Shown here: positions 18,426 through 48,349 of the stretch, in pieces
Layout of the letters: every line of letters begins with the position of its first letter
Position numbering within the stretch: position 1 is the first letter of the stretch
Sequence record: PQ657772.1
Strand: one strand, 5' to 3'
Length of the DNA: 64,000 nt
The notes under the pieces: model-generated
Databases searched by the model: none
The model's input: the letters and a program-made list of their open reading frames with translations, nothing else
What the model was told of the DNA's origin: nothing
Made by a program: the position numbers and the translations under genes

Positions 18426-18926
18426 TTAGGTCACAGCTTTGTATTTCTCCATTGCTTCGGTGATATTCAATACTGCTTGCGGTACGTCACTTTTGTTGTA
18501 TGCAGTGGTTAGTTTTTCCATGTTATTGAGAAGACTTAGAAACAATGGAAGTACTTCTGCATTGTCACTGAAGTTACAATCATTGACAGTACTCAATTGG
18601 AATAACTCACCTGCATCAACATTGAGTGTGTTGTATTCTTTAACAATGTTTTCTTCAGTATTGAAGATGTAGAATACAGTCCCCATGTGGTGTAAGTATA
18701 CACCAGTATCATTCTGAATATGACATGGGGTGATTACAATTGCTGTGTTATCAATATTATTTACTATTGTCAAACGCAGACTATGTAACCCAAAGATTAC
18801 AGTACAATCCTTTGTGCTGTGTTGGATCTGGTCACTAGTAAAGGAAGACCCACTAGAAGTTTTAGACCCATTTAGTATTTCTTTGATAATTTTAAATGAA
18901 TACTTCATCGAATTAGTTAAAAGCAT
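18426..18926 (-). CDS. FQxS-motif family protein
   Basis: DAGELFQLSTVND. Confidence 0.75.
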   Translation of the reverse strand: MLLTNSMKYSFKIIKEILNGSKTSSGSSFTSDQIQHSTKDCTVIFGLHSLRLTIVNNIDNTAIVITPCHIQNDTGVYLHHMGTVFYIFNTEENIVKEYNTLNVDAGELFQLSTVNDCNFSDNAEVLPLFLSLLNNMEKLTTAYNKSDVPQAVLNITEAMEKYKAVT

Positions 18927-19326
18927 GAACTTTACCTTTAAGTAAATTAATTAATGTTCGCATAGATTCAGTACTGACAGTCCCAAAATCAACACCTAAG
19001 CACTCGTATTGAAAGAACTCAATAGAATCAATTGAGTCCAAAGGAATCTCAACAACCTGATTCCCTATACCAGACATAGTAACATTGCTTTTATTAATCG
19101 TCAAGAAGTTTTTTGAATAAGTATTAAATTTTAGTGAAATCGCATCGGGGTGCTTTGTAACAATGCAGTACTGGGAGCCATACACATATAGTACTTTACT
19201 TTCACTAAGATCTGTTTTAAAAAAATGAATCCCATTGAAGTATTTCTCATTGGCTCCCATCGCCGCGATTAGTTCATCTGTTGTTGTTAACCTTGTTTCG
19301 TTCTTCGTTAAACTGTTGAAAAGCAT
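18913..19326 (-). CDS. FQxS-motif family protein
   Basis: SIEFFQYECLG. Confidence 0.7.
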   Translation of the reverse strand: MLFNSLTKNETRLTTTDELIAAMGANEKYFNGIHFFKTDLSESKVLYVYGSQYCIVTKHPDAISLKFNTYSKNFLTINKSNVTMSGIGNQVVEIPLDSIDSIEFFQYECLGVDFGTVSTESMRTLINLLKGKVHAFN

Positions 19327-19747
19327 AGAATACTACCTTAACCATTTGTAGTGTTTCAGACATTACTTCTGATGAAAATTCAACATCATTGAATTTCAGC
19401 ATAGTGTTCTGTGTAAAGAAAGTTGCTTCTAAGTCTTCTAGATTGAAGGGTTCATCAAACAAATTAGTACTGAACATGTCAGTCTTCTTCTTGTATGTGA
19501 ACAAGAATTTGGAATTATAACGAAGAACTATTTCATCTTTATTGACCAGAATGCGTGCAATGTTCTGACGTGCTAATGTGGTAATGTTTAAATTGAACAC
19601 GTTCTTGCGTGTTTCTGTGATATCAACAAAATACCCATCTCCCTGATGGATATTACATCGTACATCCAACCCTTTCTGTACTGTATTGAACAGTGCATCT
19701 TGAATAAAATAATTTGCTGTATCGATGTTTCCTAAAATGTCTAACAT
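19274..19747 (-). CDS. FQxS-motif family protein (degenerate)
   Basis: LEATFFTQNTML. Confidence 0.65.
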   Translation of the reverse strand: MLDILGNIDTANYFIQDALFNTVQKGLDVRCNIHQGDGYFVDITETRKNVFNLNITTLARQNIARILVNKDEIVLRYNSKFLFTYKKKTDMFSTNLFDEPFNLEDLEATFFTQNTMLKFNDVEFSSEVMSETLQMVKVVFYAFQQFNEERNKVNNNR

Positions 19748-20259
19748 AACTTCTCCTTGATTGCTGTCATATTTAGAAGAAATTCTTCAAGCAATTCCTC
19801 TGTAACATACTCAACATACCAGAATATCACAATATCTTTTGAAAGTCGAGTATTCTTAAAAATATCTACTAACTCTTTGTAGTACTCAAGATCATATACA
19901 TCTTTTATAATTAGTGAGTACTGAAATAGTGATTCTTCAGTTAACTTAAATTCTGGATATAGTAAGTCATTAAATTCTAATGATTCTGATTGTACTTTTA
20001 TTTTAGTGAAGTCATTTGTTAATCCACCATTACATCCATATAATGCAGCGTAATTCACGAACTTGGCTTTTGGATTAAAATCAAGAACAGTTTCACCATT
20101 ATATGACAATCGGTGGAACGCCGTGAACTTTGTAATTTGCCACGGTTGCTTAATATCTAAGTCATTTATGTCTTTATTATTGTACATAAGAACAGTGAAT
20201 ATTTCAGCAATCTTCAATAATAATTTAGTACGTGCTAGTACTGTCATAGGTTCAATCAT
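19741..20259 (-). CDS. FQxS-motif family protein
   Basis: TEESLFQYSLII. Confidence 0.75.
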   Translation of the reverse strand: MIEPMTVLARTKLLLKIAEIFTVLMYNNKDINDLDIKQPWQITKFTAFHRLSYNGETVLDFNPKAKFVNYAALYGCNGGLTNDFTKIKVQSESLEFNDLLYPEFKLTEESLFQYSLIIKDVYDLEYYKELVDIFKNTRLSKDIVIFWYVEYVTEELLEEFLLNMTAIKEKLC

Positions 20260-20672
20260 TATACACCTTCATATTCATCAAGGAAATCTTCGATGATCAT
20301 TTCTGCATCATCCATATGCATAGCATCAACTTCAACAATGCGAACCTTAGACGTATCCCAAATCATATAGCTAGGAACTGTATCTGGTTCGTAATCGTTT
20401 TTGTACTGAACTGCATCATAGCCGTTAATTTCGCAGTACTCAATCACTCCACGCCATTCGTCGTCACTGCCCATATCCGTCCACAGAAGCACGTTATCAA
20501 CATCAACTTCTAAGGTATGTAAGTATACTGTATCAGCGTCAACAACGTTCAGTGGGCTTCTCAGCTTGCGTAATGCAGCTTCTAAAGCACTGTGTTTTCC
20601 ACCCATATGAAGGCCACCATACGGGATATAAAAGTTATCAATTTTTACAGTACTCGCATGATACAGTTTCAT
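20259..20672 (-). CDS. Putative ADP-ribosyltransferase-fold protein
   Basis: N-terminal LYHAS, G.H.G....A, GYDAVQYKNDYE....SYMIWD pattern of phage ART-like domains (from recall, not searched). Confidence 0.55.
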   Translation of the reverse strand: MKLYHASTVKIDNFYIPYGGLHMGGKHSALEAALRKLRSPLNVVDADTVYLHTLEVDVDNVLLWTDMGSDDEWRGVIEYCEINGYDAVQYKNDYEPDTVPSYMIWDTSKVRIVEVDAMHMDDAEMIIEDFLDEYEGV

Positions 20673-20681
20673 TATTCATTC

Positions 20682-21266
20682 CTATTTCAGTACTTTGACC
20701 AGGGCTTTAACCGCTGTTTCAAGTTGTGCAAAGTCGTTGATTGTAAGATAATGAATACCCAATGTACTCATTTCTGAATCTATTTTACTATACAAATCGA
20801 ACATGTCAAGTAGATATTGATATGTATATGACTCCGATGACACACATGATTCTTGAAATAGACGTTCTTCCATATCATTTACTACTTCATCATTTACGTC
20901 TCGAATCACACCATCTTTGTATGTGTAGTAAATCTCATCCCATTCATCTGATAAGCGGAATAGTAAAGGTTTACCATTAAACATCTCAAGGTCATATGCA
21001 TTGACTTCACTCAATAACATATCATCAGGATCAGGTGTGAAATCGAATTGAGCGAGTGAAGAACCATCATAATCCTTAAGGAATACACCAATAGCATTCA
21101 ATTTAACTTCGCCATAATTGCCATTCTTGAACTTTACACGAATATTAATATCAATGTTTTGAACAGTATCATCATCTTGGAATTGATAATCAATTTTATA
21201 CTTTTCCCAAAGTTTTTTAATATCTTTAAAGTACTTAATTTTACTTTCTATTTCTTTAAAGTTCAT
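20682..21266 (-). CDS. FQxS-motif family protein
   Basis: MEERLFQESCVS. Confidence 0.75.
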   Translation of the reverse strand: MNFKEIESKIKYFKDIKKLWEKYKIDYQFQDDDTVQNIDINIRVKFKNGNYGEVKLNAIGVFLKDYDGSSLAQFDFTPDPDDMLLSEVNAYDLEMFNGKPLLFRLSDEWDEIYYTYKDGVIRDVNDEVVNDMEERLFQESCVSSESYTYQYLLDMFDLYSKIDSEMSTLGIHYLTINDFAQLETAVKALVKVLK

Positions 21267-21858
21267 CTGGAACCGCCATCTCTTGTATGTTCTTGCATTT
21301 TATCATTGCACAATTAGTATGTAAAATGATAGCGTACTTGTGTAATGATTTAATTTTATAACACTCATTAAGTACTGAAATGATGCCCCATAACTCTTCT
21401 ACATCAATAGTGATAGGTTCACTAGTACTAAGTTGCATTAGTGCTGCTTCCACATCATCTTTGTTATTGATTTTGAACTGCATACCACGTTTCAGTATTT
21501 TGGTTTTTGGATTATACTCTGCCATTACATCACCTTCAGGGTAACCCTCGTGTAATAATAATGTAGTCTCATAATCTCCACAATTGAAATTAATTTCATC
21601 ATAGTCAGGAACACAAATCATTCCTTCACCATATTGATTATCTACTGATTCGATTGTTAAAATACGCTGATGTTCATTACTCAGGATAATAGAATCATGC
21701 CAGTACTGCGTAGTGAATTTACTACGTTTCTTTTGACAGCACATACTTGACATGGGACCATACTTTTTATATAGGGACTTCTTGAATGCTATCGCATCAG
21801 GAGCCACCTTAATAACTTCTCGAATTAGGTCAATAGCTTCTTGATAACTTTTTCTCAT
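21256..21858 (-). CDS. FQxS-motif family protein (degenerate)
   Basis: VEAALMQLSTSE; start moved to MRKSYQE. Confidence 0.65.
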   Translation of the reverse strand: MRKSYQEAIDLIREVIKVAPDAIAFKKSLYKKYGPMSSMCCQKKRSKFTTQYWHDSIILSNEHQRILTIESVDNQYGEGMICVPDYDEINFNCGDYETTLLLHEGYPEGDVMAEYNPKTKILKRGMQFKINNKDDVEAALMQLSTSEPITIDVEELWGIISVLNECYKIKSLHKYAIILHTNCAMIKCKNIQEMAVPDEL

Positions 21859-22406
21859 TTGTCGTACCCATATAAAATATGATCTAAAGTGCATTGAACT
21901 TCTTCATGGAAGAACAACGGGTAAATTTGTATCAATTTTTCTTTAAGTTCAAGTGAATGACATAATTCTAATGCTTTGATACAATCTTCATATTTGACTA
22001 AATTATGCAATGTACTTAACTGAAAATGTTGTTCTTCAGAGTAAGCTAAATCATATACGATATTATCATCTAATAGGTTTGATTTAGTTGAAGGATCAAG
22101 TACTGTGTTGCTATGACCTACCCAGAAAAAAGCATTGGTGTTCATATTATTACAACCCCAACCTGCCCCCATTTTCTGGTGAATAGCAAAGACACAACTA
22201 TCATAGAGATTAATACCAAGACGTTCTTCGTTGACATAAATCGTAACACCATCGATTGTCATGGTTATTTGGAAACGCATTGAACCTTCACTTCGTGATC
22301 GTGCACAGAAGACAAGATAACGGTTGATAATTGTATTGATTTTATCTGCCCATCCTTCCACATCTTTGGATGCACATAATTTAAAAAGATCATGACTTTG
22401 ATTCAT
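21855..22406 (-). CDS. FQxS-motif family protein
   Basis: SEEQHFQLSTLHN. Confidence 0.75.
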   Translation of the reverse strand: MNQSHDLFKLCASKDVEGWADKINTIINRYLVFCARSRSEGSMRFQITMTIDGVTIYVNEERLGINLYDSCVFAIHQKMGAGWGCNNMNTNAFFWVGHSNTVLDPSTKSNLLDDNIVYDLAYSEEQHFQLSTLHNLVKYEDCIKALELCHSLELKEKLIQIYPLFFHEEVQCTLDHILYGYDK

Positions 22407-22417
22407 GTAGTTCTCCG

Positions 22418-22999
22418 TTAATCAAGCATAAGTGGCATCATCGCCCATATCTTTTTCATAATCATATCTTCAGTAAAAACAAACGTTTTAGGTGCAGTAT
22501 ATGATATTGACAACCCAAATGGAAGTACGATTGCATCATCAATTATATTATGAATATCAAACCATGTTTTTACACAATCATATGGTGGAAGTTCATGTAT
22601 TGTACTTAACTGAAAGTATTGTTCTTCACCAAATGTACTACAATCAATATCACAAATTTTAGTGAATTGATGATTCCATTTAGATATAATACTGTTTTTA
22701 TTATTGAACATATTAGTTCTATGCATGAAACCATTTCTGCTAATATGATTTGATATTGCGTTTTCTTCAATATCATTGCTTATTTTAAAATTCATGTCAA
22801 AGTTGTAGTGCGAACTCGACGATTCTTTGAATTTTAAATGAAAATAACGATTGTTATTAATTTCCATTTCAATACAAAACACATCTGAATCAAAACGATT
22901 AAACTTGTAATCGTTGTCTTCAGGTAGAGTCTGTAATTTTTTCATAACACCAAGCATAGGGTGCACTAAGCTTCTAATAAAATCATTAGTTATTTTCAT
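22418..22999 (-). CDS. FQxS-motif family protein
   Basis: GEEQYFQLSTIHE. Confidence 0.75.
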   Translation of the reverse strand: MKITNDFIRSLVHPMLGVMKKLQTLPEDNDYKFNRFDSDVFCIEMEINNNRYFHLKFKESSSSHYNFDMNFKISNDIEENAISNHISRNGFMHRTNMFNNKNSIISKWNHQFTKICDIDCSTFGEEQYFQLSTIHELPPYDCVKTWFDIHNIIDDAIVLPFGLSISYTAPKTFVFTEDMIMKKIWAMMPLMLD

Positions 23000-23492
23000 A
23001 GTATTCCTTTAGAACTTTAAATGATTCAACAATACTATCTTGTGTGTAATTAGAACTATATACAATTGCATTTGATTTGATTGACCACAGATATGACATA
23101 AAGGTTATAACACTACTACATGAACTTAATGTATTGTTTTGGAATTCATTTTCTTCAATGTTATCAGTACTGGTATTGATGAATTGGATAGTATCTTGTT
23201 TCTGATTAGACATTGAAACTAAAGTACAATCAGTATAAGGAGTGTACAAAAACGTCTCATTACTAATTGAACTATCATTAGTATATGATGGTTTGGTAAT
23301 ATAAATCAAACGCATGATATCACGCTCAATACCCGATTTACGACTTTCCACTAAAGAAATCATATCTATATTTTTCATATGATCAACATTGACATGGAAC
23401 TTTTTGTTTAGAATTACATCTTTTGGGGAATTTTTATATGAAGATAAGATCTCATACATCTCAACTAATTCTCGTGCATTTAATAAACTCAT
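22986..23492 (-). CDS. FQxS-motif family protein
   Basis: IEENEFQNNTLSS. Confidence 0.7.
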   Translation of the reverse strand: MSLLNARELVEMYEILSSYKNSPKDVILNKKFHVNVDHMKNIDMISLVESRKSGIERDIMRLIYITKPSYTNDSSISNETFLYTPYTDCTLVSMSNQKQDTIQFINTSTDNIEENEFQNNTLSSCSSVITFMSYLWSIKSNAIVYSSNYTQDSIVESFKVLKEYYENN

Positions 23493-23917
23493 GTTTTGTC
23501 TCTTAATGAAAGAATATCCTTAGTATAAACTGATACAGAAATGTGATTGTATTTCATCATTAATTTATACACATAAGAAGCTAGTACTAAATCGTAAATT
23601 AATTTAGTATCATACAGTACTCCGTATTGTAAAGCAAGTGAATCAATATCATCTTTACTTTCAATATCCAGAAATGTGCCGAAATATGTAGTACCGTGGA
23701 GATGAAAATTGGAATTAATGCAATCAATGCATTCATTGTCCAACAGAGTAGATGATGATGCCCTCGGTGAATCCCAAATAGTCACTGCGTGTATGCCCTC
23801 AACGAACAAATCTATCCATATTTTGTGTCGTTGTCTTTTTTTTGTTTTATAATTTTCTGGATTTGAAAGTGTAGTTTCAATTATATCCCATATGTATAAG
23901 CATTCATCTCTTGTCAT
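23489..23917 (-). CDS. FQxS-motif family protein (degenerate)
   Basis: IDSLALQYGVLYD. Confidence 0.6.
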   Translation of the reverse strand: MTRDECLYIWDIIETTLSNPENYKTKKRQRHKIWIDLFVEGIHAVTIWDSPRASSSTLLDNECIDCINSNFHLHGTTYFGTFLDIESKDDIDSLALQYGVLYDTKLIYDLVLASYVYKLMMKYNHISVSVYTKDILSLRDKT

Positions 23918-24495
23918 TATAGCACCTTATCCATTGCTGCATTTAATGCTTTTAAACGATCAACATTCAAAGTATTGAAGATGTACGTTCCTAAAATGTG
24001 GAAATCGAACTGGTTCTTTTTGTATGTGTGATAAATTAAACTACAAAAAACAACAGTACTAAGAACCTCTTCAGGTATAACGGTGCTCATCTGAAACAGT
24101 TCTTCATCAACTGTACTTGATTCTGGATTGATAGCTTTTAACTCATACTCTTTATCACCGAATAGTACTTTAATATTATATAAAACACCAACAGTACTAA
24201 TATGAAATGGATGGTGTGAAAAACTTCCATCATCATTAATTTGGATATCGGATCTAATCTCGCACTCTTCATTACTTTTACTATTATTTTTTACAATACA
24301 AATATTCCTGGCACCAGAAATAGTAAGAATACCGTGATCGTAATATTCTTTGGACAAACATTTAGATGAAAATGACACATCACGAATGAGGTAATGTTTG
24401 TTAATTTCTTTGGCACTACCAACAATGTGTAGCATCTTTGTACTGATATCATATAGCTGTTGGTGTCGGGCTGTCATATAACTATAAGCGTTCAT
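23917..24495 (-). CDS. FQxS-motif family protein
   Basis: VDEELFQMSTVIP. Confidence 0.75.
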   Translation of the reverse strand: MNAYSYMTARHQQLYDISTKMLHIVGSAKEINKHYLIRDVSFSSKCLSKEYYDHGILTISGARNICIVKNNSKSNEECEIRSDIQINDDGSFSHHPFHISTVGVLYNIKVLFGDKEYELKAINPESSTVDEELFQMSTVIPEEVLSTVVFCSLIYHTYKKNQFDFHILGTYIFNTLNVDRLKALNAAMDKVL

Positions 24496-25066
24496 ATGTA
24501 TCCTTGATGTTTTTGATTGCCGTGTGTAGCTCTTTTAATGTATCGGATTCACAGTTAATGAACTTACTATACATTACCAATTCACCAGTGTCAATAGCTT
24601 TTGCAGTTTCATAGCAAAGCATCATGTACTCAAACTCCTTGAAGTTGTCAAGTACTGATCTCTGGAAAATGTATGCTTCACGAATGTCTTCACTTTGATC
24701 TAGTTCTGGTGGAATTTCCAAATATGTATCATTCTCTACGTCATCAAAATTAGATTCAACAATTCGATTAATATCTTCGTGTAAAGCATTGACAAATATC
24801 ATGTTTGGAGTAATGGAACCGATTTGCTCACTATGCCTTGATGTGCGGATATACATTGCCATAGTATCCCATGAACCTTTTTTCGTCGTTCCATAATCGT
24901 AAACTTTATAAGACTCCAGTACTACTGAACCAAAACGATATGGTGATTTGCATTCAACTTTAAGACGATAATTTCCAATAGGCTCATGTTCAGTAATGTT
25001 GTGCTTTTCAGATAGTTCTGCAATGTCATGCATCAATTTCATAATTTGAATGTGTTCAGCTTGCAT
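24482..25066 (-). CDS. FQxS-motif family protein
   Basis: REAYIFQRSVLD. Confidence 0.7.
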   Translation of the reverse strand: MQAEHIQIMKLMHDIAELSEKHNITEHEPIGNYRLKVECKSPYRFGSVVLESYKVYDYGTTKKGSWDTMAMYIRTSRHSEQIGSITPNMIFVNALHEDINRIVESNFDDVENDTYLEIPPELDQSEDIREAYIFQRSVLDNFKEFEYMMLCYETAKAIDTGELVMYSKFINCESDTLKELHTAIKNIKDTYERL

Positions 25067-25629
25067 TATAAGTCCTCTAATTTAACAGGTACATGTTCAT
25101 TGATGAACGTCTTAAGAGCCAGTACTAGATCTTCTAATTCTTCTGTACTGAATTTTAATATAGTTTTAAAGATTATCAATTCATTTCTTTCTATAATCTT
25201 TGGAATTTCATATGCTAACATAAGATTGCGAACAGTGCCAGTGTTGTGTATGAGGTTCGCATTGAATAAAAGTACATCGTACTCGTCTTTTTTAATTTTA
25301 TAATTGTACTCTTCAATTACTTCATGTGTGTATGTATTCTTATAAGCAATTTTATTTTTATGAAATTTATAACCAACAGTAACACTATCATCATAAAATG
25401 TAGAACGATAATCTTGTTTTCTATCGCCGGACGAAATGATGTGTAATGCTGTGTATTTGTCCTCAACATCTAACTCAATGTTTGCATAACTGTTAACGGT
25501 TTCATTCTTTAGGACGTTAATGTTATATTTCTCATTAACTTTAATGTACTGGCGTGAACCATTATCATCAATGAACTTAAAACAATGCTTTACCAACAAT
25601 GTGATTTCTTTAATTAATTCAGTACTCAT
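25066..25629 (-). CDS. FQxS-motif family protein (degenerate)
   Basis: YDVLLFNANLIHN; AGGAG RBS. Confidence 0.65.
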   Translation of the reverse strand: MSTELIKEITLLVKHCFKFIDDNGSRQYIKVNEKYNINVLKNETVNSYANIELDVEDKYTALHIISSGDRKQDYRSTFYDDSVTVGYKFHKNKIAYKNTYTHEVIEEYNYKIKKDEYDVLLFNANLIHNTGTVRNLMLAYEIPKIIERNELIIFKTILKFSTEELEDLVLALKTFINEHVPVKLEDL

Positions 25630-25656
25630 ATCTTCTCCTGTACTCTGTTAAAAGCG

Positions 25657-25685
25657 ATTATAACACACCTGAATGCTCATGTAAA
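25657..25685 (-). promoter_or_regulatory. Sigma70-type promoter
   Basis: TTTACA-17 nt-TATAAT with TG extension. Confidence 0.7.
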
Positions 25686-25690
25686 GCACT

Positions 25691-25718
25691 AAACACAAAA
25701 AGACCCATAAGGGTCTTT
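25691..25718 (-). terminator. Intrinsic terminator
   Basis: AAAGACCC-TTAT-GGGTCTTT then TTGTGTTT. Confidence 0.7.
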
Positions 25719-29509: not shown

Positions 29510-29542
29510 TGTGATATAACCCTTTACAATTAATATAAAGAG

Positions 29543-29572
29543 ATTATATCACAAAGATTTGGAGGGTGTCAA
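29543..29572 (-). promoter_or_regulatory. Sigma70-type promoter
   Basis: TTGACA-18 nt-TATAAT with TGA extension. Confidence 0.65.
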
Positions 29573-30102: not shown

Positions 30103-30109
30103 ACTAACC

Positions 30110-37446: not shown

Positions 37447-37449
37447 AAT

Positions 37450-38202: not shown

Positions 38203-38250
38203 CAGCACCCTTCAGCACCCTTTAGCACCCTTTAACAACCTTTAACAACT
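38202..38250. repeat. Five tandem degenerate 10-bp repeats
   Basis: TCAGCACCCT TCAGCACCCT TTAGCACCCT TTAACAACCT TTAACAACT. Confidence 0.75.
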
Positions 38251-38786: not shown

Positions 38787-38796
38787 TGTACTTTCC

Positions 38797-39656: not shown

Positions 39657-39865
39657 GTGTGCCTCAACCTTATCTTGTGTTAAAATATTCACTGAAATGA
39701 TTATAACACAAAAGCACCACGATGTTAAGCACTCTGTTGTCAAAATCATCTTGTGATGTAGGATGCAAGGACGCATTGATGTTAAAATTCACTATATCAT
39801 TGTGGAATTGGTATGTGAACAAATCAAACTTCGTATGCCTTTGTTTGATATCATAGGCGGTCATA

Positions 39866-41046: not shown

Positions 41047-41073
41047 AGGTATCTCCTTAAAAAATGATTACAC

Positions 41074-41102
41074 ATTGTACCATGCATTTGTACTCGTGTC
41101 AA
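41074..41102 (-). promoter_or_regulatory. Sigma70-type promoter
   Basis: TTGACA-17 nt-TACAAT with TG extension. Confidence 0.75.
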
Positions 41103-41104
41103 AC

Positions 41105-41133
41105 AAAAAAAGCCCATATCTTACGATACAGGC
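41105..41133 (-). terminator. Intrinsic terminator abutting the promoter
   Basis: GCCTGTATC-GTAA-GATATGGGC then TTTTTTT. Confidence 0.8.
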
Positions 41134-41618
41134 ATGTTTATTTGAATTTCATTGTACAAATCATCAATATATAGACATGAAAACGATAAACTTTCTTTAA
41201 CTATATTGTTGTGATAAAGCATTTTAAATGCAATATAGAAAAATAAATCAATATCATCATGTACTAAATTCTGCTGGAACCACCACTCTTCTGTTAAATC
41301 TTGTGCATTAAAATCATCAGGAACTACAATTGACGACATATCAGCATCTTCTTTGTACTCAAACCACATGTCGTCATTTGGATAACGTTCATGCTTCTCT
41401 GGGTAACAATTGCTGGGATTAAATGCTAAAATATAAAATGCCGTCGCAGAATGTTCTTTATTATAAAATGAATTATTCCACACCTGATACCTTTCACCAA
41501 CATCAAACTCTTTTGATACTGATGTTATTGCACATAATGTACGATATATTGTTTCTATTTTGTGAACAAATTTAAAGGCTGCATCTAAACTGAACTCTAA
41601 ATCAGACATGCGGTGCAT
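41121..41618 (-). CDS. FQxS-motif family protein
   Basis: TEEWWFQQNLVHD. Confidence 0.75.
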   Translation of the reverse strand: MHRMSDLEFSLDAAFKFVHKIETIYRTLCAITSVSKEFDVGERYQVWNNSFYNKEHSATAFYILAFNPSNCYPEKHERYPNDDMWFEYKEDADMSSIVVPDDFNAQDLTEEWWFQQNLVHDDIDLFFYIAFKMLYHNNIVKESLSFSCLYIDDLYNEIQINMPVS

Positions 41619-41938
41619 AAAATTACCTCAACTAAAATAAGAACGGTATTGAATTCGATGCAACCTTTGATACCTTGATTGTACATGTACTTTGCTACTA
41701 CATATTTCTGTACTAAATTATAATTATTAAATTCCTCAAAATTGTAATTTAGAATGAAATTTGTACTCAAAAATAACTTATGCATCTCTAATGCACTCTG
41801 ATAATATTTGTACAACTCTCTGATATCAATACTTTGTAAATCACTTTGTTCATATCTATGATAAGGAATGGCTTCAATTTCAATACTATAAAACCATTCT
41901 CTTAACTTCTTAATATCAAATGTATTATTCAGCTTCAT
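41597..41938 (-). CDS. FQxS-motif family protein (degenerate)
   Basis: NFEEFNNYNLVQK. Confidence 0.62.
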   Translation of the reverse strand: MKLNNTFDIKKLREWFYSIEIEAIPYHRYEQSDLQSIDIRELYKYYQSALEMHKLFLSTNFILNYNFEEFNNYNLVQKYVVAKYMYNQGIKGCIEFNTVLILVEVILCTACLI

Positions 41939-42494
41939 AACTCAATACCTCCATTAAGCACTCATAAACACCATCAATCGCATAAGCACAAAAACTGAAA
42001 TTAATTTTGTTATTCTTGTGTAATGGACTATTGTATACTGTACTCAACATAACACTATAAAACAAAGAACGTTCATGTGTAAATAATGATTCCTGAAAAA
42101 ATGCTTCCTCTGATTTAATTTTATTATATTCAATCGATTGATCATTAGAATAAAATGAATCTTGATTTGAATTGTACCATGTGTAATCCAAATCATTCTT
42201 TGATATAACTGGTGTTGGATTAAACTGTAAAAGACTAATAACACTACGGGCATTTGGGGTATCAGGTGTATTGAATCGTTTGTCAAAATAACTTGTGCAC
42301 GCAATATGTGAATCAAAATCAGATGGTTTAAACCCCATGAATGCGTTAATGATTCTTGTATATGGTTTTTTATTATGTGCTGCTTTTTGTACATTATATA
42401 AGGCTGCAACAATACAAGCTAACTTTTGTCCCATTAGGATTGCATTAGCGTAGGTGTACTGAATTTCATTGCTGGTACTGTACTTCGAGATCAT
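41925..42494 (-). CDS. FQxS-motif family protein
   Basis: SEEAFFQESLFTH. Confidence 0.75.
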   Translation of the reverse strand: MISKYSTSNEIQYTYANAILMGQKLACIVAALYNVQKAAHNKKPYTRIINAFMGFKPSDFDSHIACTSYFDKRFNTPDTPNARSVISLLQFNPTPVISKNDLDYTWYNSNQDSFYSNDQSIEYNKIKSEEAFFQESLFTHERSLFYSVMLSTVYNSPLHKNNKINFSFCAYAIDGVYECLMEVLSYEAE

Positions 42495-42792
42495 GGAACA
42501 GCCTCACTTTGCCTAACTCGTCATTGGATATTAATTCGTTAACAGCTTTCTGTATATTCTTTAATAATAGCACATCAAATCCTTTTGTGTCAAGCACACA
42601 TTGCATTTGGAAGAATTCTTCTTCTGATAATGTATTAAAATCCACAAAATTGTCTAATATTACGTCATTATCCAAATGTGCCATGTGCCATGTATTTCTT
42701 TCGGAGCGTTTAATAAAATTCCATCCATCTGGATAATCGGGTTCTAATTCTACATATATCCCTGATAATGTATAAAGCATTTTATACTTCAT
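42466..42792 (-). CDS. FQxS-motif family protein, MKYKMLY subfamily
   Basis: FNTLSEEEFFQMQCVLD. Confidence 0.78.
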   Translation of the reverse strand: MKYKMLYTLSGIYVELEPDYPDGWNFIKRSERNTWHMAHLDNDVILDNFVDFNTLSEEEFFQMQCVLDTKGFDVLLLKNIQKAVNELISNDELGKVRLFHDLEVQYQQ

Positions 42793-42812
42793 AACTATTG
42801 TACTCATTGCTT

Positions 42813-43124
42813 TCACTGTACGTCGATGTCATAATACGCTCCTACTTCATAATCTTTCTTGCTTTGGAATTCATTAACGACTTTCTGTATATTTCTTAAT
42901 GTTACCATGTCATGTCCGTACATGTCAACCACCAATTGCATTTGGAAAAATTCTTCTTCAGATAATGTATTAAAATCTATAAAATAATCCGTAACAACAT
43001 GTGCGTCTAAATTTGCCATGTACCATTGATTGGTATCGACCTCTTTAACCAAATTCCATGCATCTGAATCGGATTCTAATTCTACATATATTAATGTTAA
43101 TGTATACAGCATTTTATACTTCAT
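42813..43124 (-). CDS. FQxS-motif family protein, MKYKMLY subfamily
   Basis: FNTLSEEEFFQMQLVVD. Confidence 0.78.
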   Translation of the reverse strand: MKYKMLYTLTLIYVELESDSDAWNLVKEVDTNQWYMANLDAHVVTDYFIDFNTLSEEEFFQMQLVVDMYGHDMVTLRNIQKVVNEFQSKKDYEVGAYYDIDVQ

Positions 43125-43620
43125 AACTATATCCTTGCATTAATAAATCATAAACGTTTGAAAGGTGCGGAATTTTGATATAAAATTTAAAACCCTTAAT
43201 TAAAGGATTCGCGTACAATGAACTGAATAACTTTAGATAATGTATTTGACGAGGACTGTATAATAACGATTTCTGAAATAATTCAGCACTACAATCTGTA
43301 CTAATATCAATTAAATCAATTCGTGCTTCTACTTCATCATCTTGTTTCAAAACATAAAAGAAATAATCGTTTGTGTTGACCCACAAATACCCTTCACTAT
43401 TTTCGTATATAACAGGAGATGCTTGTTCTGGATTGCCTTGGGCAAATGCTGCAAAACAAACTTTTGCATTACTTTCATCTTTAAACATAAACGATAATTT
43501 ATCATATCTATCTTCTATGCGTAAATCACCTATAAAAATGTACTTATGCATAGAATGATTATTCTTGAGCATAAGCATTACTGTACTAATCTTGTGTGCT
43601 AACAATTCTATCTCATTCAT
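43114..43620 (-). CDS. FQxS-motif family protein, MNEIELL subfamily
   Basis: SAELFQKSLLYS; ends LLMQGYSYEV. Confidence 0.78.
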   Translation of the reverse strand: MNEIELLAHKISTVMLMLKNNHSMHKYIFIGDLRIEDRYDKLSFMFKDESNAKVCFAAFAQGNPEQASPVIYENSEGYLWVNTNDYFFYVLKQDDEVEARIDLIDISTDCSAELFQKSLLYSPRQIHYLKLFSSLYANPLIKGFKFYIKIPHLSNVYDLLMQGYSYEV

Positions 43621-43626
43621 ATATTA

Positions 43627-43707
43627 TTACCTATTGATAGATACATCGTCATTGACTTCTAATTCAACATAAATCATATCTTTTGTATAAAGCATTTTAT
43701 ACTTCAT
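43627..43707 (-). pseudogene. Truncated remnant of an MKYKMLY-subfamily gene (26 aa)
   Basis: MKYKMLYTKDMIYVELEVNDDVSINR-stop; same overlap junction as 42813..43124. Confidence 0.7.
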
Positions 43708-44257
43708 AACTATATCCTTGCATTAAAAGATCATAAGCAATATCAACTAATTCTAAACGAATGAAAAATTTTAAATTATCTTTCAATGGATTCAAATGCA
43801 TTGTACTAAACAACATAAGATACTTCATTTGATTTGTATTGTATATTAGGGATGTCTGAAATACTTCTGCTTCATTGTAAGGATCAATGAATTTTATACC
43901 TTCTTCACTATAATCCGTTTTGGAATTTTGATATATAAAATAATCATCACCATAATTGTACCACAAATAACCTTCAAAACTGGAATCAAATTCTGAATTT
44001 TCATTTCGCATTAAAGGTGATACTGAAATTGGATTTGAACCAACTGTTGCACAAACCTCAATGAAAGCATCTTCATTTCCCTTAACTTCTTCTTTGATTT
44101 TATCATTGTACTGTCCTGCAAAACCAGCTTTTACTTCCAAATATAAACTACTCCCAACTTTATTAATTCTTAAAAGGGAACTCTGTACTGTATTCGCATT
44201 GTTCAGCACTAACGATATTGTGCAAATCTTATGTACCAATAACTCAATATCATTCAT
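43697..44257 (-). CDS. FQxS-motif family protein, MNEIELL subfamily
   Basis: NEAEVFQTSLIYN; ends LLMQGYSYEV. Confidence 0.78.
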   Translation of the reverse strand: MNDIELLVHKICTISLVLNNANTVQSSLLRINKVGSSLYLEVKAGFAGQYNDKIKEEVKGNEDAFIEVCATVGSNPISVSPLMRNENSEFDSSFEGYLWYNYGDDYFIYQNSKTDYSEEGIKFIDPYNEAEVFQTSLIYNTNQMKYLMLFSTMHLNPLKDNLKFFIRLELVDIAYDLLMQGYSYEV

Positions 44258-44590: not shown

Positions 44591-45001
44591 CTAATCGTGC
44601 CATTTAATAGGATACTCCGTCCCATTTATTGTATAAGATATAATCCATCCGTAATGAATAGGATGATTTTTGTCTGAAACAGGAATAAAATATAAAGATG
44701 TACTGGGGTTATAACTGAATAAATCGTTGTTACCAATTGTAAAATGTGATAACTCAATCTTCCTTGTACCTGTACTTGGACGAAGAACATTCTTAACACC
44801 GAAGACTGTACCTTGATATTTCTCGGAAAATTCAAACAATGCATCTGCAATTAAATCACGAAACTCCGCATGTATGGTTTCAAAAAAATCTATATTACAC
44901 GATGTTTTAATATCCTTGAACTCCTTATATAAAGAGCTTCTTGTATTCAAAAGAAATATTACTTTTTTAAGATCCTGAACTATTTCTGGATTCATATTCA
45001 T
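44591..45001 (-). CDS. Hypothetical protein
   Basis: Tiling ORF. Confidence 0.7.
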   Translation of the reverse strand: MNMNPEIVQDLKKVIFLLNTRSSLYKEFKDIKTSCNIDFFETIHAEFRDLIADALFEFSEKYQGTVFGVKNVLRPSTGTRKIELSHFTIGNNDLFSYNPSTSLYFIPVSDKNHPIHYGWIISYTINGTEYPIKWHD

Positions 45002-45218
45002 TTATCTCATTCTGTAACTTAAGCATCAAAATTTGCATATTAATTTTTTGTACAAGATGATTGAGAAATTTCTGTACTGTATCTTCTTGTTCTTTTGTAC
45101 CAAGATAAAATAACATATTAAATTCAGATAATCTCAGAGCGAAATCTTCCTCTCCACCTTGTAAACAAAAATCCCTGTACTTTGATGCATACAAATAACG
45201 GTTTATTTTTTTGTACAT
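44967..45218 (-). CDS. LGTNYQ-family small protein (dispersed copy)
   Basis: LFYLGTKEQEDTVQKFL. Confidence 0.75.
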   Translation of the reverse strand: MYKKINRYLYASKYRDFCLQGGEEDFALRLSEFNMLFYLGTKEQEDTVQKFLNHLVQKINMQILMLKLQNEINEYESRNSSGS

Positions 45219-45246: not shown

Positions 45247-45558
45247 TTATATGTCAATTTCAATGATCCTCCCTGACATACCTTGTATTAGCTTATCATA
45301 CATATCTAGCATCACTTTTTGAATACTAATTAATACTGGCATCGTGCAAATATCAATGTCGTATATTAAGCTGTACTGGAATAATTCCTCTTCCTGCATG
45401 TGTACTAAATTAGGTAAAAGATAATTGTCTGCCTCTTCATCCTGGTACTTGAAATGCATAACACCATCCTTTTTGTACAAAAGAATGTCAATATCACCTA
45501 ACTCTTCTGCATAACCAAAAATACATATACTCGATGTTTTTGCTATATTAAATTTCAT
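45247..45558 (-). CDS. FQxS-motif family protein
   Basis: QEEELFQYSLIYD. Confidence 0.78.
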   Translation of the reverse strand: MKFNIAKTSSICIFGYAEELGDIDILLYKKDGVMHFKYQDEEADNYLLPNLVHMQEEELFQYSLIYDIDICTMPVLISIQKVMLDMYDKLIQGMSGRIIEIDI

Positions 45559-46364
45559 GATTTATATTGTTCCTTAAAAACACCACAATGATAATTTTTA
45601 TTGTATTGTGTAATACTATAATCACACGGCATTGTCCCGCACGAAGCTCTGTGTTTTAAACGTTCCAATACCTTATCGTAATCTTTACTGAAAATTCCAT
45701 TTTCATTGGGCGTAGCAATCATTAATGCTTGCTCATATAAATCTTTTGTTCTTGTTGAACCATGCGAATGTTTGTTAAAATAAAATACATATTCAACTTC
45801 CCAATTACTTCTTAAATAGGATATTCCGTAATTGGTAATCATATAATAATGTAAATCCTTGTAATAATTGAATGTCTTATCTGTATTAATCAAAATATAT
45901 GAAGAACTATCATTGTCCTTAATAACAAATAAACGACCAATCTTATTTTCTTTATCTTTAACTAATTGTCTAATTTCATCACCTTCTTCAAATTTACGAT
46001 GCACTTCAATTACAGATTTAGCAATCCCAGTCTGTACTAAAGATTCATATGCTGCGTACATAAAATCACTTACATGACCTAAACCAACATCTTCTTTTCT
46101 TGGTGTCTCTGTTGTATTGACAAACATATTCAATAACTTTTCAATTGAAAAATCAGTACTGCAATCTTTATTAATTTTAATTTTTTCTCGAATCTCTTCC
46201 TTTAATGCATTAATATATTGCTCTTGTGCTGCTTCCTGATAATTTGTACCAAGATATAAACTCAAGGCAACTGAACCTTTGTAAGATGCTGATTTCTTTA
46301 AATCACCAGAACTAAATTTTTTCATAATCAAATTGGTTGCTTCAGATTCTGTTAAAAATTTCAT
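45555..46364 (-). CDS. Fusion of an N-terminal LGTNYQ domain to a 200-aa unknown domain
   Basis: MKFLTESE...LYLGTNYQEAAQEQYINALKEEI then unrelated sequence. Confidence 0.75.
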   Translation of the reverse strand: MKFLTESEATNLIMKKFSSGDLKKSASYKGSVALSLYLGTNYQEAAQEQYINALKEEIREKIKINKDCSTDFSIEKLLNMFVNTTETPRKEDVGLGHVSDFMYAAYESLVQTGIAKSVIEVHRKFEEGDEIRQLVKDKENKIGRLFVIKDNDSSSYILINTDKTFNYYKDLHYYMITNYGISYLRSNWEVEYVFYFNKHSHGSTRTKDLYEQALMIATPNENGIFSKDYDKVLERLKHRASCGTMPCDYSITQYNKNYHCGVFKEQYKS

Positions 46365-46472
46365 ATCATTGTACCTTATCTTAAAATTGAATAGGTAAAC
46401 ATGTTAACACTATTCAAATGGTGTGTCAACATTGATCTTCATTCTGTGAATATTAAATTTCATATTCTTCTC

Positions 46473-46796
46473 TTATATGTGGAATTCACATACGTGTTGA
46501 ACAAAATTCGGTGGAAGATGACAATGTGCAATCATCTGCTTTTGTACTTCCTTCATATCTTCGAATGTAAATCCTAAAGAATCATCATGTACTAACAAGT
46601 ACTGAAACTCTTCTTCTTCAGAGATAGAACATAAATTCGGTACTGAAATTGTTTTTGCTTTTCTTGCACCCAATTTCCAATGAAAAGAATTATTGCATTT
46701 TCTGTACTCAAATATCTTCAACCCAGAACCTGTATTAAAATCAGCTACTACAATGTAACATGAATTCTTACGTACAATACAATTGAACTTACGCAT
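46473..46796 (-). CDS. FQxS-motif family protein
   Basis: SEEEEFQYLLVHD; start moved to MRKFNCI. Confidence 0.75.
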   Translation of the reverse strand: MRKFNCIVRKNSCYIVVADFNTGSGLKIFEYRKCNNSFHWKLGARKAKTISVPNLCSISEEEEFQYLLVHDDSLGFTFEDMKEVQKQMIAHCHLPPNFVQHVCEFHI

Positions 46797-47070: not shown

Positions 47071-47099
47071 ACTATATCAGTAATGAAAAGTACTGTCAA
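47071..47099 (-). promoter_or_regulatory. Sigma70-type promoter with AGTACT overlapping -35
   Basis: TTGACA-17 nt-TATAGT with TGA extension. Confidence 0.72.
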
Positions 47100-47100
47100 G

Positions 47101-47475
47101 CTAGTATTGCACTGTTCTAATGAAAGTACCTTTACTCATGGATTTAAGCTTATGAACCTCTTCCTGCATACCCTTAATTAACCCTAAAGGTATAGGTAAA
47201 TCATGTACTAAGCTGTACTGAAAGTATTCTTCTTCAGATAAAGTACTAACATCTGGAATGCCAATTTTAGTTAGATAATCTTGATGTGTTGACCAATAAA
47301 TTATATCTTCAGTACTATTGTACTCCCCATATACTGAACAATATTGATGAATATCTTTCCTGTATCCTTGAGCAATAAAGAACTTATCTACTGCATTACC
47401 AGCATTAATAGAATTCACTTCGATTGTCACAGTACTTGAGCTTGTTTTTCCTTTACTATGCATATTAATCCCCAA
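47101..47475 (-). CDS. FQxS-motif family protein
   Basis: STLSEEEYFQYSLVHD. Confidence 0.78.
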   Translation of the reverse strand: MGINMHSKGKTSSSTVTIEVNSINAGNAVDKFFIAQGYRKDIHQYCSVYGEYNSTEDIIYWSTHQDYLTKIGIPDVSTLSEEEYFQYSLVHDLPIPLGLIKGMQEEVHKLKSMSKGTFIRTVQY

Positions 47476-47651
47476 ATTAGATATCGAACACTATCAGCTT
47501 GATAGTTAGTTCCTACTGTGTGTTTTAATATTAACTCATCTTTCAGTACTGAACATTCTGCATTAGATATAGGAAGAGAATTAATTCTTTGAATTTCTGG
47601 TCGCAAAATACCGCGAAGCTTGCGGTAATCTTTGTATGATAATATTTTCAT
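47427..47651 (-). CDS. LGTNYQ-family small protein
   Basis: HTVGTNYQADSVRY. Confidence 0.72.
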   Translation of the reverse strand: MKILSYKDYRKLRGILRPEIQRINSLPISNAECSVLKDELILKHTVGTNYQADSVRYLIWGLICIVKEKQAQVL

Positions 47652-47654
47652 TGT

Positions 47655-47996
47655 TTAGTACTCAACGATGTGTTCTTCATAACCATTAAACTCCGGTTTA
47701 GTTTCTTTCATTAGGACTACCATTTTATGTACTAATGGCATAGGAAATTCTAAATCCCATACTAATGATTCTTGAAAGTATTCTTCTTCAGATAAAGTAC
47801 TTAAATCTTTAATATCAACGTGCTTGTATATTTTCTTTTCGTAATTAAGAAATGATATATATAAATCATTAACATAAGAATCATAAGTAATTGTGAATGG
47901 CTTACCCTTGTAGTCCATTACATCTTTACATAGACTGCATTTGATATATGTATGTTCTTCTGAACTGTATACATTGAGTTGTATATTAGTTTTCAT
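47655..47996 (-). CDS. FQxS-motif family protein (recent duplicate of 48011..48349)
   Basis: DLSTLSEEEYFQESLVWDLEFPMPLVHK. Confidence 0.8.
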   Translation of the reverse strand: MKTNIQLNVYSSEEHTYIKCSLCKDVMDYKGKPFTITYDSYVNDLYISFLNYEKKIYKHVDIKDLSTLSEEEYFQESLVWDLEFPMPLVHKMVVLMKETKPEFNGYEEHIVEY

Positions 47997-48010
47997 AGTT
48001 ACCTTATATA

Positions 48011-48349
48011 TTAATACTCAATAATGTGTTCTTCATAACCATTAGGTACAGGTTTAGTTTCTTTCATTAGTACTATCATCTTATGTACTAATGGCATAGG
48101 AAACTCCAAATCCCATACTAATGATTCTTGAAAGTATTCCTCTTCAGATAAAGTACTTAAATCTTCAATGTCAATGTGTTCGTATATGTTATATTTGTAA
48201 TCAGCAAAAGATATATAAAAACCTCTTGTATTATCATAAGTAAGTGCAAATGGCTTACCTTTGTAGTCCATTACAGAGTTACATGTATGGCATTTGATGT
48301 ATGTACTTGCAAATGATTTATATACCTTGAGTTTTATATTAGTTTTCAT
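48011..48349 (-). CDS. FQxS-motif family protein (recent duplicate of 47655..47996)
   Basis: DLSTLSEEEYFQESLVWDLEFPMPLVHK. Confidence 0.8.
   Translation of the reverse strand: MKTNIKLKVYKSFASTYIKCHTCNSVMDYKGKPFALTYDNTRGFYISFADYKYNIYEHIDIEDLSTLSEEEYFQESLVWDLEFPMPLVHKMIVLMKETKPVPNGYEEHIIEY

Follow-up and report, generated by a model that had tools for sequence, protein, structure and literature searches.

Lineage-specific expansion of one small domain has a jumbo-phage precedent in the zinc ribbons of Bacillus phage G, whose roughly 35 copies were termed unprecedented (PMC7824862). The family described here, which we call the FQ family after its invariant Phe-Gln pair, is likewise an expansion without known function of a single small domain in a jumbo phage, but it has another fold and more copies in EC.P1; the same jumbo-phage survey does not mention it (PMC7824862). 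Multi-copy paralogues also occur in the phiKZ head/inner-body family (PF12699), several copies of which are individually dispensable. Unlike the FQ proteins, they form part of the virion and undergo processing by the head protease; they have fewer copies, a Pfam domain of their own and no similarity to the FQ family. The internal proteins of phage T4 are very divergent apart from one short conserved segment; their genes lie in plastic regions, and some of the proteins have anti-defence activity. That segment is an N-terminal capsid-targeting peptide, which is cut off by the head protease, and the proteins themselves are packaged. The FQ motif, in contrast, is internal and part of the fold, and the virion proteome of phage phAPEC6 contains no orthologue. 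Blocks of small uncharacterised genes near a terminal repeat, comparable to the array described here, are found in the long-terminal-repeat region of PA5oct and the presumed early region of phage CBB, where they are read early by host RNA polymerase or preceded by RpoD-like promoters; the papers on these two phages describe no such family or motif. A parallel in organisation may be drawn with the terminal multigene families of the poxvirus/asfarvirus type, which also comprise dozens of diverged tandem paralogues of one small fold, lie near the genome end beside a terminal repeat, grow by duplication and differ in copy number among relatives. Their hosts are eukaryotes rather than a bacterium, they have no sequence or fold relationship to the FQ family, and their role in host range and immune evasion could be extended to it only by analogy.

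A multigene family of RaK2-type jumbo phages

The DNA analysed (the window) forms the final 64 kb of the genome of Escherichia phage EC.P1, a jumbo phage of the PBECO4/121Q/RaK2 type that belongs to Asteriusvirus. An earlier note on this DNA had proposed that about 50 ORFs with a short F-Q motif form one large, undescribed family, and that a profile of the motif should be searched across related genomes. Of the window's 161 minus-strand ORFs, 36 contain the strict pattern F-Q-x-S-[LTVIM]; residue-shuffled proteins gave 0.66 on average and 4 at most. An iterated profile HMM converges on 45 minus-strand ORFs, 44 within 18426-48349 and one at 5124, which encode proteins of 103-229 aa rather than the 100-280 aa first given. 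Three further motif-bearing ORFs are borderline (5810-6388, 22986-23492 and 32305-32841; HMM E 5e-5 to 6e-3) and those at 21256 and 24482 hold only a motif-like string, which together reproduces the original count. The window thus contains 45-48 members, and at least 49 are HMM-supported in 164 kb of EC.P1. Mean column identity in the 45-member alignment is 12%, but the HMM aligns members nearly full length, including the N-terminal parts that had been thought to differ beyond recognition. The block is large, as claimed, but not all of its roughly 30 kb is devoted to the family, whose ORFs make up 20.4 of the 29.9 kb (68%) of 18426-48349. We conclude that these ORFs constitute one lineage-specific multigene family of RaK2-type jumbo phages.

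All members lie on the minus strand and are tightly packed and co-oriented. A solitary member adjoins the RNA ligase gene (5124-5813; HMM E 7e-16; FQ at residue 108 of the ATG-start form). The overlapping ORF 5810-6388 is a probable divergent member in which the motif is present (E 6e-4 to 5e-2 by profile; hhalign probability 28% over the motif). Two other outliers named in the note, at 13642 and 14869, are unsupported. The promoter-distal end of the array is formed by 18426-18926 (E 2.7e-17), whose reciprocal best match is the last RaK2 array gene. Beyond it lie single members at 19741-20259 (E 3e-13) and 20682-21266 (E 1.5e-15), two adjacent members within 21855-22999 (21855-22406 and 22418-22999; E 2.6e-17 and 3.9e-22; phrog_34636), a probable divergent member with Asn for Ser at 22986-23492 (E 5e-5 to 1e-3), a member at 23917-24495 (E 6.3e-16) and a second adjacent pair within 25717-26794 (25717-26235 and 26228-26794; E 7.6e-21 and 1.4e-19). 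A run of eight occupies 27317-30797 (E 5.6e-14 to 9.5e-27), with members starting at 27317, 27799, 28196, 28551, 29030, 29569, 30110 and 30438. It is followed by a member at 31396-31950 (E 7.3e-19), a probable divergent member with a TTG start and Ser then Cys in its motif at 32305-32841 (E 3e-4 to 6e-3), and a run of eleven at 32838-37530 (E 5.9e-13 to 7.8e-31) with starts at 32838, 33281, 33724, 34035, 34456, 34947, 35384, 35856, 36357, 36713 and 37069. Two runs of five, 38232-41046 (E 1.1e-11 to 7.9e-28; starts 38232, 38797, 39138, 39866 and 40471) and 41925-44257 (E 1.6e-13 to 1.5e-23; starts 41925, 42466, 42813, 43114 and 43697), flank a single member at 41121-41618 (E 1.2e-20). Short-form members follow at 45247-45558 (E 1.5e-16), 46473-46796 (E 2.9e-17; 50% identical to its RaK2 reciprocal match) and 47101-47463 (E 3.3e-20). 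The most similar paralogue pair, 47655-47996 and 48011-48349 (73% identical), completes the array at 47655-48349.

The family extends to the database and to other phage genomes, although a full HMMER scan of 1.84 billion representatives yielded only 170 matching clusters. At the syntenic site RaK2 carries 31 members; at least five motif-bearing genes occur in Serratia phage BF, and one uncultured contig has at least 30 copies in 20.6 kb. We looked for a description of the family in papers and curated families and found none; Pfam and PADLOC searches gave no match, nor did a sequence search of the PDB. Individual members match PHROGs 9317, 12674, 13866, 15629, 19795, 28680, 30978, 32531, 33775, 34600, 34636, 35776 and 38478, some end to end. 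These entries are all of unknown function, split the family over at least 13 groups, and record neither its unity nor its common motif. The FQ family, about 50 very divergent copies of one small protein, is therefore previously undescribed, as the note had supposed.

Genome position, promoters and selection

The terminal-repeat boundary of phage fEgEco12 maps to about window position 54.8 kb (PMC13070987), which places the array just inside the left terminal repeat. In a promoter search, all 12 matches to at least 11 of the 12 hexamer positions lie on the coding strand, and four of these, plus one 10/12 match, fall in the rare intra-array gaps; the total number of promoter-like sequences is not above that in shuffles, and the best ones are distinguished solely by their strand and position. 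Putative sigma-70-like promoters on the minus strand, each with TG before the -10 hexamer, lie in gaps at 47071-47099 (intergenic; 11/12), 46401-46429 (10/12) and 29543-29572 (12/12, in a 59-bp gap). Others are predicted just downstream of the terminator-like hairpin 41112-41133 (41074-41102; 11/12), just downstream of the hairpin 25699-25718 (25657-25685; 11/12) and at 39700-39728 (11/12), upstream of where the 39138 gene would start according to its PHROG match, which sets in at residue 41. Genes in or near the repeat of the related phage PA5oct are early and depend on host RNA polymerase (PMC7318152). The array of EC.P1 is probably also transcribed early by the host sigma-70 RNA polymerase.

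How did so many copies arise? The best paralogue lies no more than two family neighbours away in 19 of 33 members, a value equalled in none of 10,000 randomisations, and the family arose largely by tandem duplication. In the comparison of EC.P1 with RaK2, 13 of 45 and 15 of 31 members, respectively, have a closer counterpart in the other genus than among the paralogues of their own genome. For six of the 45, the PBECO4 locus contains no reciprocal partner. For 39 orthologue pairs between EC.P1 and PBECO4, dN/dS is 0.26, compared to 0.22 for 76 neighbouring genes. The family is under purifying selection, and the gene-wide ratio for these pairs reveals no positive selection, although a family engaged in an arms race might show it. 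Might the genes instead be selfish or decaying duplicates without organismal function, the motif being their slowest-decaying remnant? Their extreme divergence and patchy orthology would fit such an origin. It is nonetheless very improbable given intact reading frames, a dN/dS like that of neighbouring genes, positional orthologues kept across genera, and tight, co-oriented packing with predicted promoters in the gaps.

The FQ motif and the predicted fold

Phe and Gln are invariant in all 45 aligned members, and the pair is present in 193 of 196 relatives retrieved from the database. Because codons are mixed at the invariant positions (Phe, 27 TTT and 18 TTC; Gln, 28 CAG and 17 CAA) and the conserved Ser is encoded by both AGY (20) and TCN (15), conservation acts at the protein level. 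The motif lies at 0.50-0.78 of protein length. A near-constant number of residues, about 50, separates it from the C-terminus: 43 of 45 members have 39-71, and the remaining two have 80 and 97. The stretch before it varies from 60 to 165 residues. Relative to the motif, column -5 is S21/T8/D5/N2, -4 is E35, -3 is E30, -1 is 89% hydrophobic and +7 is D22/N6/T4/S3, and the residue preceding the last helix is D17/N11/T5. These conserved polar residues mostly show helix-cap preferences. Hydrophobic positions next to the pair vary freely, unlike Phe and Gln themselves, and the position directly after Gln is hypervariable and probably solvent-facing.

AlphaFold models of a long form (35856-36347; pLDDT 89.3, pTM 0.83) and a short form (30438-30797; pLDDT 78.1, pTM 0.73), built on alignments of 45 and 20 sequences that were mostly paralogues, both predict one compact alpha/beta domain in the order sheet, FQ helix, long helix, strand. 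The N-terminal part forms the beta-sheet of this same domain. In the long form, residues 112-124 (35976-36014, minus strand) hold the motif, with F117 and Q118 in helix 113-119, and a helix follows, as the note had anticipated. The motif block has the highest pLDDT in each model, 97 in the long form (tied with one other block) and 93 in the short. Neither model found a match in a Foldseek search of the PDB (best E 1.7 and 0.11; TM at most 0.38), and the fold has no detectable solved relative. A member would consist of a four- to six-stranded sheet, a short capped FQ helix, a long helix and a C-terminal strand, with an extra N-terminal helix in long forms. The FQ motif would be the keystone of this fold: the Ser/Thr and acidic run ahead of it shows the residue choice expected of a helix N-cap and its hydrophobic partner, the Asp/Asn at +7 from Phe that of the next helix's N-cap, Phe and its hydrophobic neighbours may pack the helices against the sheet, and Gln most likely forms a fixed hydrogen bond at the helix-sheet junction.

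Candidate functions

Positions with a purely structural role are not usually conserved as strictly as both Phe and Gln are here. The earlier note had pictured a variable recognition domain joined to a constant docking helix, so that an exposed FQ segment binds one hub, a host machine or a phage protein, while the rest recruits differing clients. Consistent with this, the pair is fixed while neighbouring core positions vary, the residue after Gln would bring Gln near the surface, and evolution is faster in the sheet region than in the motif by a factor of about 1.7 (30% of sites differing between orthologues, against 17% in the motif and C-terminus). However, homology is full-length and the models show one domain rather than two modules, with the motif in its most confidently packed block and most conserved polar residues suited to helix caps. 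This comes close to the note's own ground for abandoning the idea, a motif buried in the core of one homologous fold, while leaving room for a shared contact site. None of the 45 members fits the bacterial sliding-clamp-binding consensus. We regard such docking as rather unlikely.

The pair could instead mark a shared ligand or catalytic site, with Phe stacking on, and Gln hydrogen-bonding to, a common small molecule or nucleotide, the proteins being sponges or enzymes for signalling molecules. Bases are commonly recognised by a pair made up of an invariant aromatic residue and an invariant amide; near the motif, several positions have acidic or hydroxyl-bearing residues in most members; and the architecture is a sheet floor topped by helices. 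Yet only two residues are invariant, other candidate site residues being replaced in 20-35% of members; no enzyme or binding family was matched by sequence or fold; and fifty copies of a single specificity are hard to rationalise, which makes this unlikely. Scarcely credible is cleavage by a Gln-specific protease that would free the near-constant C-terminal piece of about 50 residues. The acidic-aromatic-F-Q string resembles the recognition site of potyviral NIa-type proteases: the invariant Gln would stand at the point of cleavage, and 39 of 45 members have an acidic residue six positions ahead of that point. But Tyr stands third before the cut in only 16 of 45, the full pattern with a small following residue occurs in only two, and the segment is modelled as helical within a folded domain. 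The T4-type head protease cuts after Glu, and the 164 kb of EC.P1 examined revealed no Gln-specific protease.

The FQ proteins are acidic (median pI 4.8 for the 45 members), and 43 of 45 lack a hydrophobic segment, as expected of soluble proteins without membrane segments. The virion proteome of phAPEC6, the kind of data that the note had suggested consulting, has no entry between gp347 and gp549, the range into which the family orthologues (gp404c-gp466c) fall; because no orthologue is found there, packaging into the virion is unlikely, and the products would stay in the cytoplasm. Our preferred reading, to which we give a probability of about 0.45, is that this multigene family acts early and in the cytoplasm, its members binding host or defence proteins, and that FQ is the keystone of the fold. 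The anti-defence arsenal suggested earlier fits the position and predicted expression of the array; counter-defence or host takeover is itself a guess from position, copy number and analogy. The family would have grown by tandem duplication, with recombination between related phages reshuffling its members. The result may be a set of diversified binders, each neutralising or redirecting a different host or defence protein, perhaps mainly through the faster-evolving sheet side.

A divergent family sharing a Phe-Gln pair

Of the 161 minus-strand ORFs, 36 contain the strict pattern F-Q-x-S-[LTVIM]; in shuffled proteins the mean count is 0.66. BLAST alone leaves the motif carriers in separate clusters of 17, 13, 3, and 2, while an iterated profile HMM converges at 45 ORFs. 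Of these, 44 fall within 18426–48349 and the remaining one is at 5124. The 45 have E values from 1e-11 to 8e-31 and align to most of a 153-position profile; in the short members (103–137 aa), the profile match is the C-terminal two thirds. The sharing of one motif by many divergent ORFs, which an earlier note had proposed from the sequence alone, is thus borne out. When 31 non-family ORFs, mostly within the array, were compared as single sequences by hhalign, weak support was obtained for the borderline members at 5810, 22986, and 32305, and none for hidden members among the remainder. As to the outliers listed in the earlier note, 5124 is a full member and 5810 a borderline one, while 13642 and 14869 gained no support from profile or hhalign tests. 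Family ORFs occupy 20.4 of the 29.9 kb of the array region. Interleaved with them are ORFs of similar size (137–200 aa; 17910–18383, 18913–19747, 20259–20672, 23489–23917, 25066–25629, 26791–27333, and 30803–31405) that have neither the motif nor detectable profile similarity, each matching its own PHROG without assigned function. These could be members diverged past recognition or unrelated genes.

In the alignment of the 45 sequences, mean column identity is 12%, and the start Met, the Phe, and the Gln are the only invariant residues. The Phe-Gln pair is present in 45 of 45 members in the window and in 193 of 196 retrieved relatives. It lies about 50 residues from the C-terminus (39–71 in 43 of 45 members), with 60–165 residues on its N-terminal side and about 50 on the other. 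Counting from the Phe, the preceding positions among the 45 members are Ser (21), Thr (8), Asp (5), or Asn (2) at -5; Glu (35) or Asp (4) at -4; Glu at -3 (30) and -2 (20); and Tyr (16), Leu (15), or Phe (5) at -1. After the Gln (+1, 45), position +2 varies among eleven different residues, followed by Ser at +3 (35), Leu (25) or Thr (16) at +4, Val (23), Ile (12), or Leu (6) at +5, a mostly aromatic +6, and Asp (22) or Asn (6) at +7. Synonymous codons are mixed at the Phe, Gln, and Ser, the last being drawn from both codon families. The motif is therefore conserved at the protein level, and a DNA-level cause, such as a shared recombination or regulatory sequence, is ruled out.

Has this family been seen before? 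In Pfam searches with 10 and then all 45 members, no family recurred from one member to another and no match rose above threshold, and Pfam searches of the long or interspersed ORFs gave no hint of a fusion domain. PADLOC returned five unrelated single matches for the 45 members and nothing recurrent, a sequence-profile search of the PDB gave nothing significant, and in PHROGs the family is scattered over at least 13 families without assigned function. Literature on PBECO4/121Q/RaK2 paralogues, Asteriusvirus, jumbo-phage gene families, and transcriptomes yielded generic remarks only. The RaK2 paper counts paralogues as nearly 10% of gene products, and the CBB paper reports 22 paralogous ORFs. 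A survey of 224 jumbo phages, which termed a zinc-ribbon expansion of about 35 copies in phage G unprecedented (PMC7824862), makes no mention of the FQ family, whose copy number exceeds that of the phage G expansion. The motif, fold, and unity of the family are described in none of these three papers.

Predicted fold and the invariant pair

Using the 45-sequence alignment, AlphaFold modeled the long-form member 35856–36347 (163 aa) with a pLDDT of 89.3 and a pTM of 0.83. The model has an N-terminal helix (residues 3–22), six strands between residues 35 and 101, and short helices at 103–107 and 113–119, the latter containing F117-Q118; a long helix (125–139), a strand (145–148), and a helix (149–157) follow. 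The short member 30438–30797, modeled with its own alignment (pLDDT 78.1, pTM 0.73), has four strands, an FQ helix (63–72), a long helix (81–97), and a C-terminal strand. Because both models have the same order of elements, namely sheet, FQ helix, long helix, and C-terminal strand, long and short forms have one core in common, to which the long forms are predicted to add the N-terminal helix. The variable N-terminal part, which the earlier note had taken to be a separate domain, is in these models the beta-sheet of the same domain that carries the motif. Foldseek found no PDB match for the long model (best E value 1.7). The best PDB matches of the short model, MHC-class-I-like platforms (E value 0.11, TM about 0.3), were rejected as a generic sheet-plus-helices resemblance rather than homology. 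In the viral predicted-structure library BFVD, the matches are limited to uncharacterized proteins of 121Q, RaK2, SP27, Serratia phage BF, Yersinia phage fHe-Yen9-04, and GAP32. The proteins are acidic, with a median pI of 4.8, and are without membrane segments.

Why are two residues fixed in proteins that share so little else? The motif block has a pLDDT of 97, the model maximum, equaled by one other block, and on these models the FQ segment would be a structural keystone of the alpha/beta fold. Helix-capping rules, including N-cap residue preferences and the hydrophobic staple, are well established. Ser, Thr, Asp, and Asn are preferred at three places: immediately ahead of the acidic run, at +7 ahead of the following helix, and ahead of the last helix (Asp 17, Asn 11, Thr 5). 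Judged by sequence, these conserved polar positions show a preference typical of helix N-caps, and the hydrophobic flanks fit a hydrophobic staple. The absolute invariance of the Phe and Gln is left unexplained by helix-cap preferences. A docking surface shared by all members is unlikely, as is the broader proposal that some fifty diversified proteins all act through an exposed, invariant FQ contact on a single host or phage machine, or on a single ligand. If true, it would make the family a set of interchangeable adaptors that the phage encodes on a new fold, larger than any other paralogous family known in a cultured phage, and one of the main reasons why the genomes of RaK2-type phages are gigantic. 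A shared ligand-binding or catalytic site at the pair is distinctly unlikely.

Two likenesses to short linear signals were counted and rejected. Potyviral NIa-like proteases recognize an acidic P6, Tyr at P3, Gln at P1, and a small P1' residue. A protease-processing signal of this Gln-specific kind is extremely improbable, since Tyr occupies P3 in 16 of 45 members and the full pattern appears in only 2 of 45; the would-be site is predicted to be helical and to lie within a compact domain. Peptides that bind the bacterial sliding clamp consist of Gln, Leu/Met, Ser/Asp, Leu, and a closing Phe/Leu on a flexible terminus. None of the 45 members fits this consensus (Leu/Met at the second position in 9; Leu at the fourth in 25 and Thr in 16), and the FQ segment is internal and ordered in the models. 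The T4-type internal proteins share a segment at the extreme N-terminus that ends at a head-protease site, whereas the FQ motif begins 60–165 residues in. Nor do the copies appear to be functionless duplicates, which we consider very improbable: dN/dS against PBECO4 has a median of 0.26 over 39 orthologue pairs, compared with 0.22 for 76 neighboring genes. None exceeds 1, and no gene-level positive selection was seen among the PBECO4 orthologues. Orthologues differ at 30% of sites in the sheet and at 17% in the motif and C-terminus; the sheet side may be the diversifying face of the FQ proteins.

Genome setting, expression, and evolution

The window spans positions 292445–356444 of the record of Escherichia phage EC.P1 (PQ657772.1, 356,444 bp), to which megablast aligns window positions 30000–38000 with 100% identity. 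Its relatives, among them PBECO4, 121Q, phAPEC6, and fEgEco12, belong to Asteriusvirus, a genus of RaK2-type jumbo myoviruses. The minus strand carries nearly all ORFs of the window, GC content is 29–40%, and no tRNAs were found there. Every gene of the FQ-array region is annotated as 'hypothetical protein' in EC.P1. The CDS 39138–39377 looks truncated, as a PHROG match spans residues 41–212 of a longer ORF (39138–39776). Two genes at 12571–13625, 'hypothetical' in EC.P1, are a cytidyltransferase and a DNA methyltransferase in the PBECO4 and RaK2 annotation.

Phage fEgEco12 has direct terminal repeats of 20,993 bp (PMC13070987), whose boundary maps to about 54.8 kb of the window, exactly at the end of an array of small ORFs. 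This boundary gives the gene order from the genome end: the repeat, the small-ORF array (54.7–48.3 kb), the FQ array (48.3–18.4 kb), and then methylase, cytidyltransferase, RNA ligase, and polynucleotide kinase genes. The FQ array thus starts about 6.5 kb inside the repeat boundary, and transcription of the arrays and of the methylase-to-kinase genes runs away from the genome end. From 54.8 to 64 kb the window probably consists of terminal-repeat sequence, which the circular EC.P1 record would contain in collapsed form. The family phrog_4148 (without assigned function) is a second set of tandem paralogues, lying at 48339–54749 on the minus strand as 31 back-to-back ORFs of 63–93 aa. It has an invariant Thr and Gln in a G-T-x-x-Q segment and an invariant Leu eleven residues on, with strays at 31940–32131, 44967–45218, 47427–47651, and the N-terminus of 45555–46364. 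A third tandem array, of about 13 genes of 340–450 aa, occupies the plus strand at 16897–33490 of L007, a part of the EC.P1 record outside the window. By record position, these are probably the paralogous virion 'DNA condensation proteins' of phAPEC6.

Between 17000 and 57000, there are 12 sigma-70-like matches scoring 11/12 or better, every one on the coding strand and none on the other; total sigma-70-like counts are not above those of shuffles. Gaps inside the array hold four of these matches and one 10/12 match at 46.4 kb, and two of the five gap promoters adjoin terminator-like hairpins. In the gaps 25630–25716 and 41047–41120, a hairpin is followed by a promoter on the minus strand, suggesting several transcription units. 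Genes in and near the repeat of PA5oct, a related phage, belong to the early, host-polymerase-dependent class (PMC7318152), and the CBB paper proposed an early, host-polymerase reading for the equivalent region. Orthologues of the family (gp404c–gp466c) are absent from the 62-protein phAPEC6 virion proteome, from which low-copy proteins could escape; T4-type internal proteins, by contrast, are present in the virion. A packaged virion-protein reading therefore finds no support, and the family is probably expressed early and outside the virion, with products that would be cytoplasmic.

HMMER, run over all 1.84 billion representatives, returned only 170 clusters at E <= 0.001, the named members being Asteriusvirus proteins or coming from E. 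coli assemblies that contain such phages. Word-indexed searches with the family alignment and with an alignment of distant representatives returned only Asteriusvirus-type proteins, and tblastn with one member as query reached only Asteriusvirus records. Klebsiella phage RaK2 has 31 profile-supported members, 28 with the motif, in the syntenic region, which lies upstream of the dam, cytidyltransferase, rnlA, and pseT genes, and Serratia phage BF has at least 5 motif-bearing genes at the corresponding place. An uncultured 24-kb contig (Logan SRR31913103, GC 34%), without a megablast match among 50,697 phage records, carries 30 profile matches and about 6 motif-only genes among some 42 genes; at least 30 members stand almost wall to wall at 1–20609. 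Copy number thus varies from 45–48 in the window to 31 in RaK2, at least 5 in BF, and at least 30 in 20.6 kb of the contig. In the 100 kb flanking the window, solitary members lie at 3135–3551 and 16382–16783 of L006, another part of the EC.P1 record, and at 31638–32288 and 46573–47145 of L007, for a count of at least 49 over the window and flanks. One solitary member outside the window lies on the opposite strand inside the third tandem array.

For 19 of 33 members, the closest paralogue is a near neighbor, a value not reached in 10,000 randomizations; identity is 73% in the most similar pair. A cross-genus relative is closer than any paralogue of the same genome for 13 of 45 EC.P1 and 15 of 31 RaK2 members. 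Much of the expansion is therefore older than the genus split, with local duplications later. Array orthologues of EC.P1 and PBECO4 range from 40 to 98% identity (dS from 0.03 to above 2) within this one genome pair, which marks the array as a mosaic made by recombination and not a block diverging at one rate.

A viral multigene family

We conclude, with a probability of roughly 0.85–0.9, that these genes form one lineage-specific multigene family with an alpha/beta fold that has no match among solved structures. We file it as a viral multigene family that stands out by its size, by a new fold, and by having two invariant residues. Like the terminal multigene families of large eukaryotic viruses, it forms a tandem array beside the genome terminus and differs in copy number among relatives. 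The likeness is one of functional kind, not homology, and a role in host defense or host range is putative here. That the proteins are diversified binders of host or defense proteins acting in counter-defense is a guess, to which we give slightly less than even odds.

In 350-kb coliphages of this type, more than 80% of genes are without assigned function (PMC7247149). With about 20 kb of DNA and at least 49 of the 586 annotated features, the FQ family makes up about 8% of EC.P1 genes, and it is conserved across Escherichia, Klebsiella, and Serratia phages. Once they are recognized as a single fold, some fifty hypothetical proteins, spread over at least 13 PHROGs, can be approached as one tractable problem, and the two invariant residues offer structural work a sharply defined handle. 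If members bind host or defense proteins, the family would supply a large number of new inhibitors; if they have one common partner, they would constitute a new kind of adaptor system. The family also gives bacterial viruses an equivalent of the terminal multigene families found in large viruses of eukaryotes.
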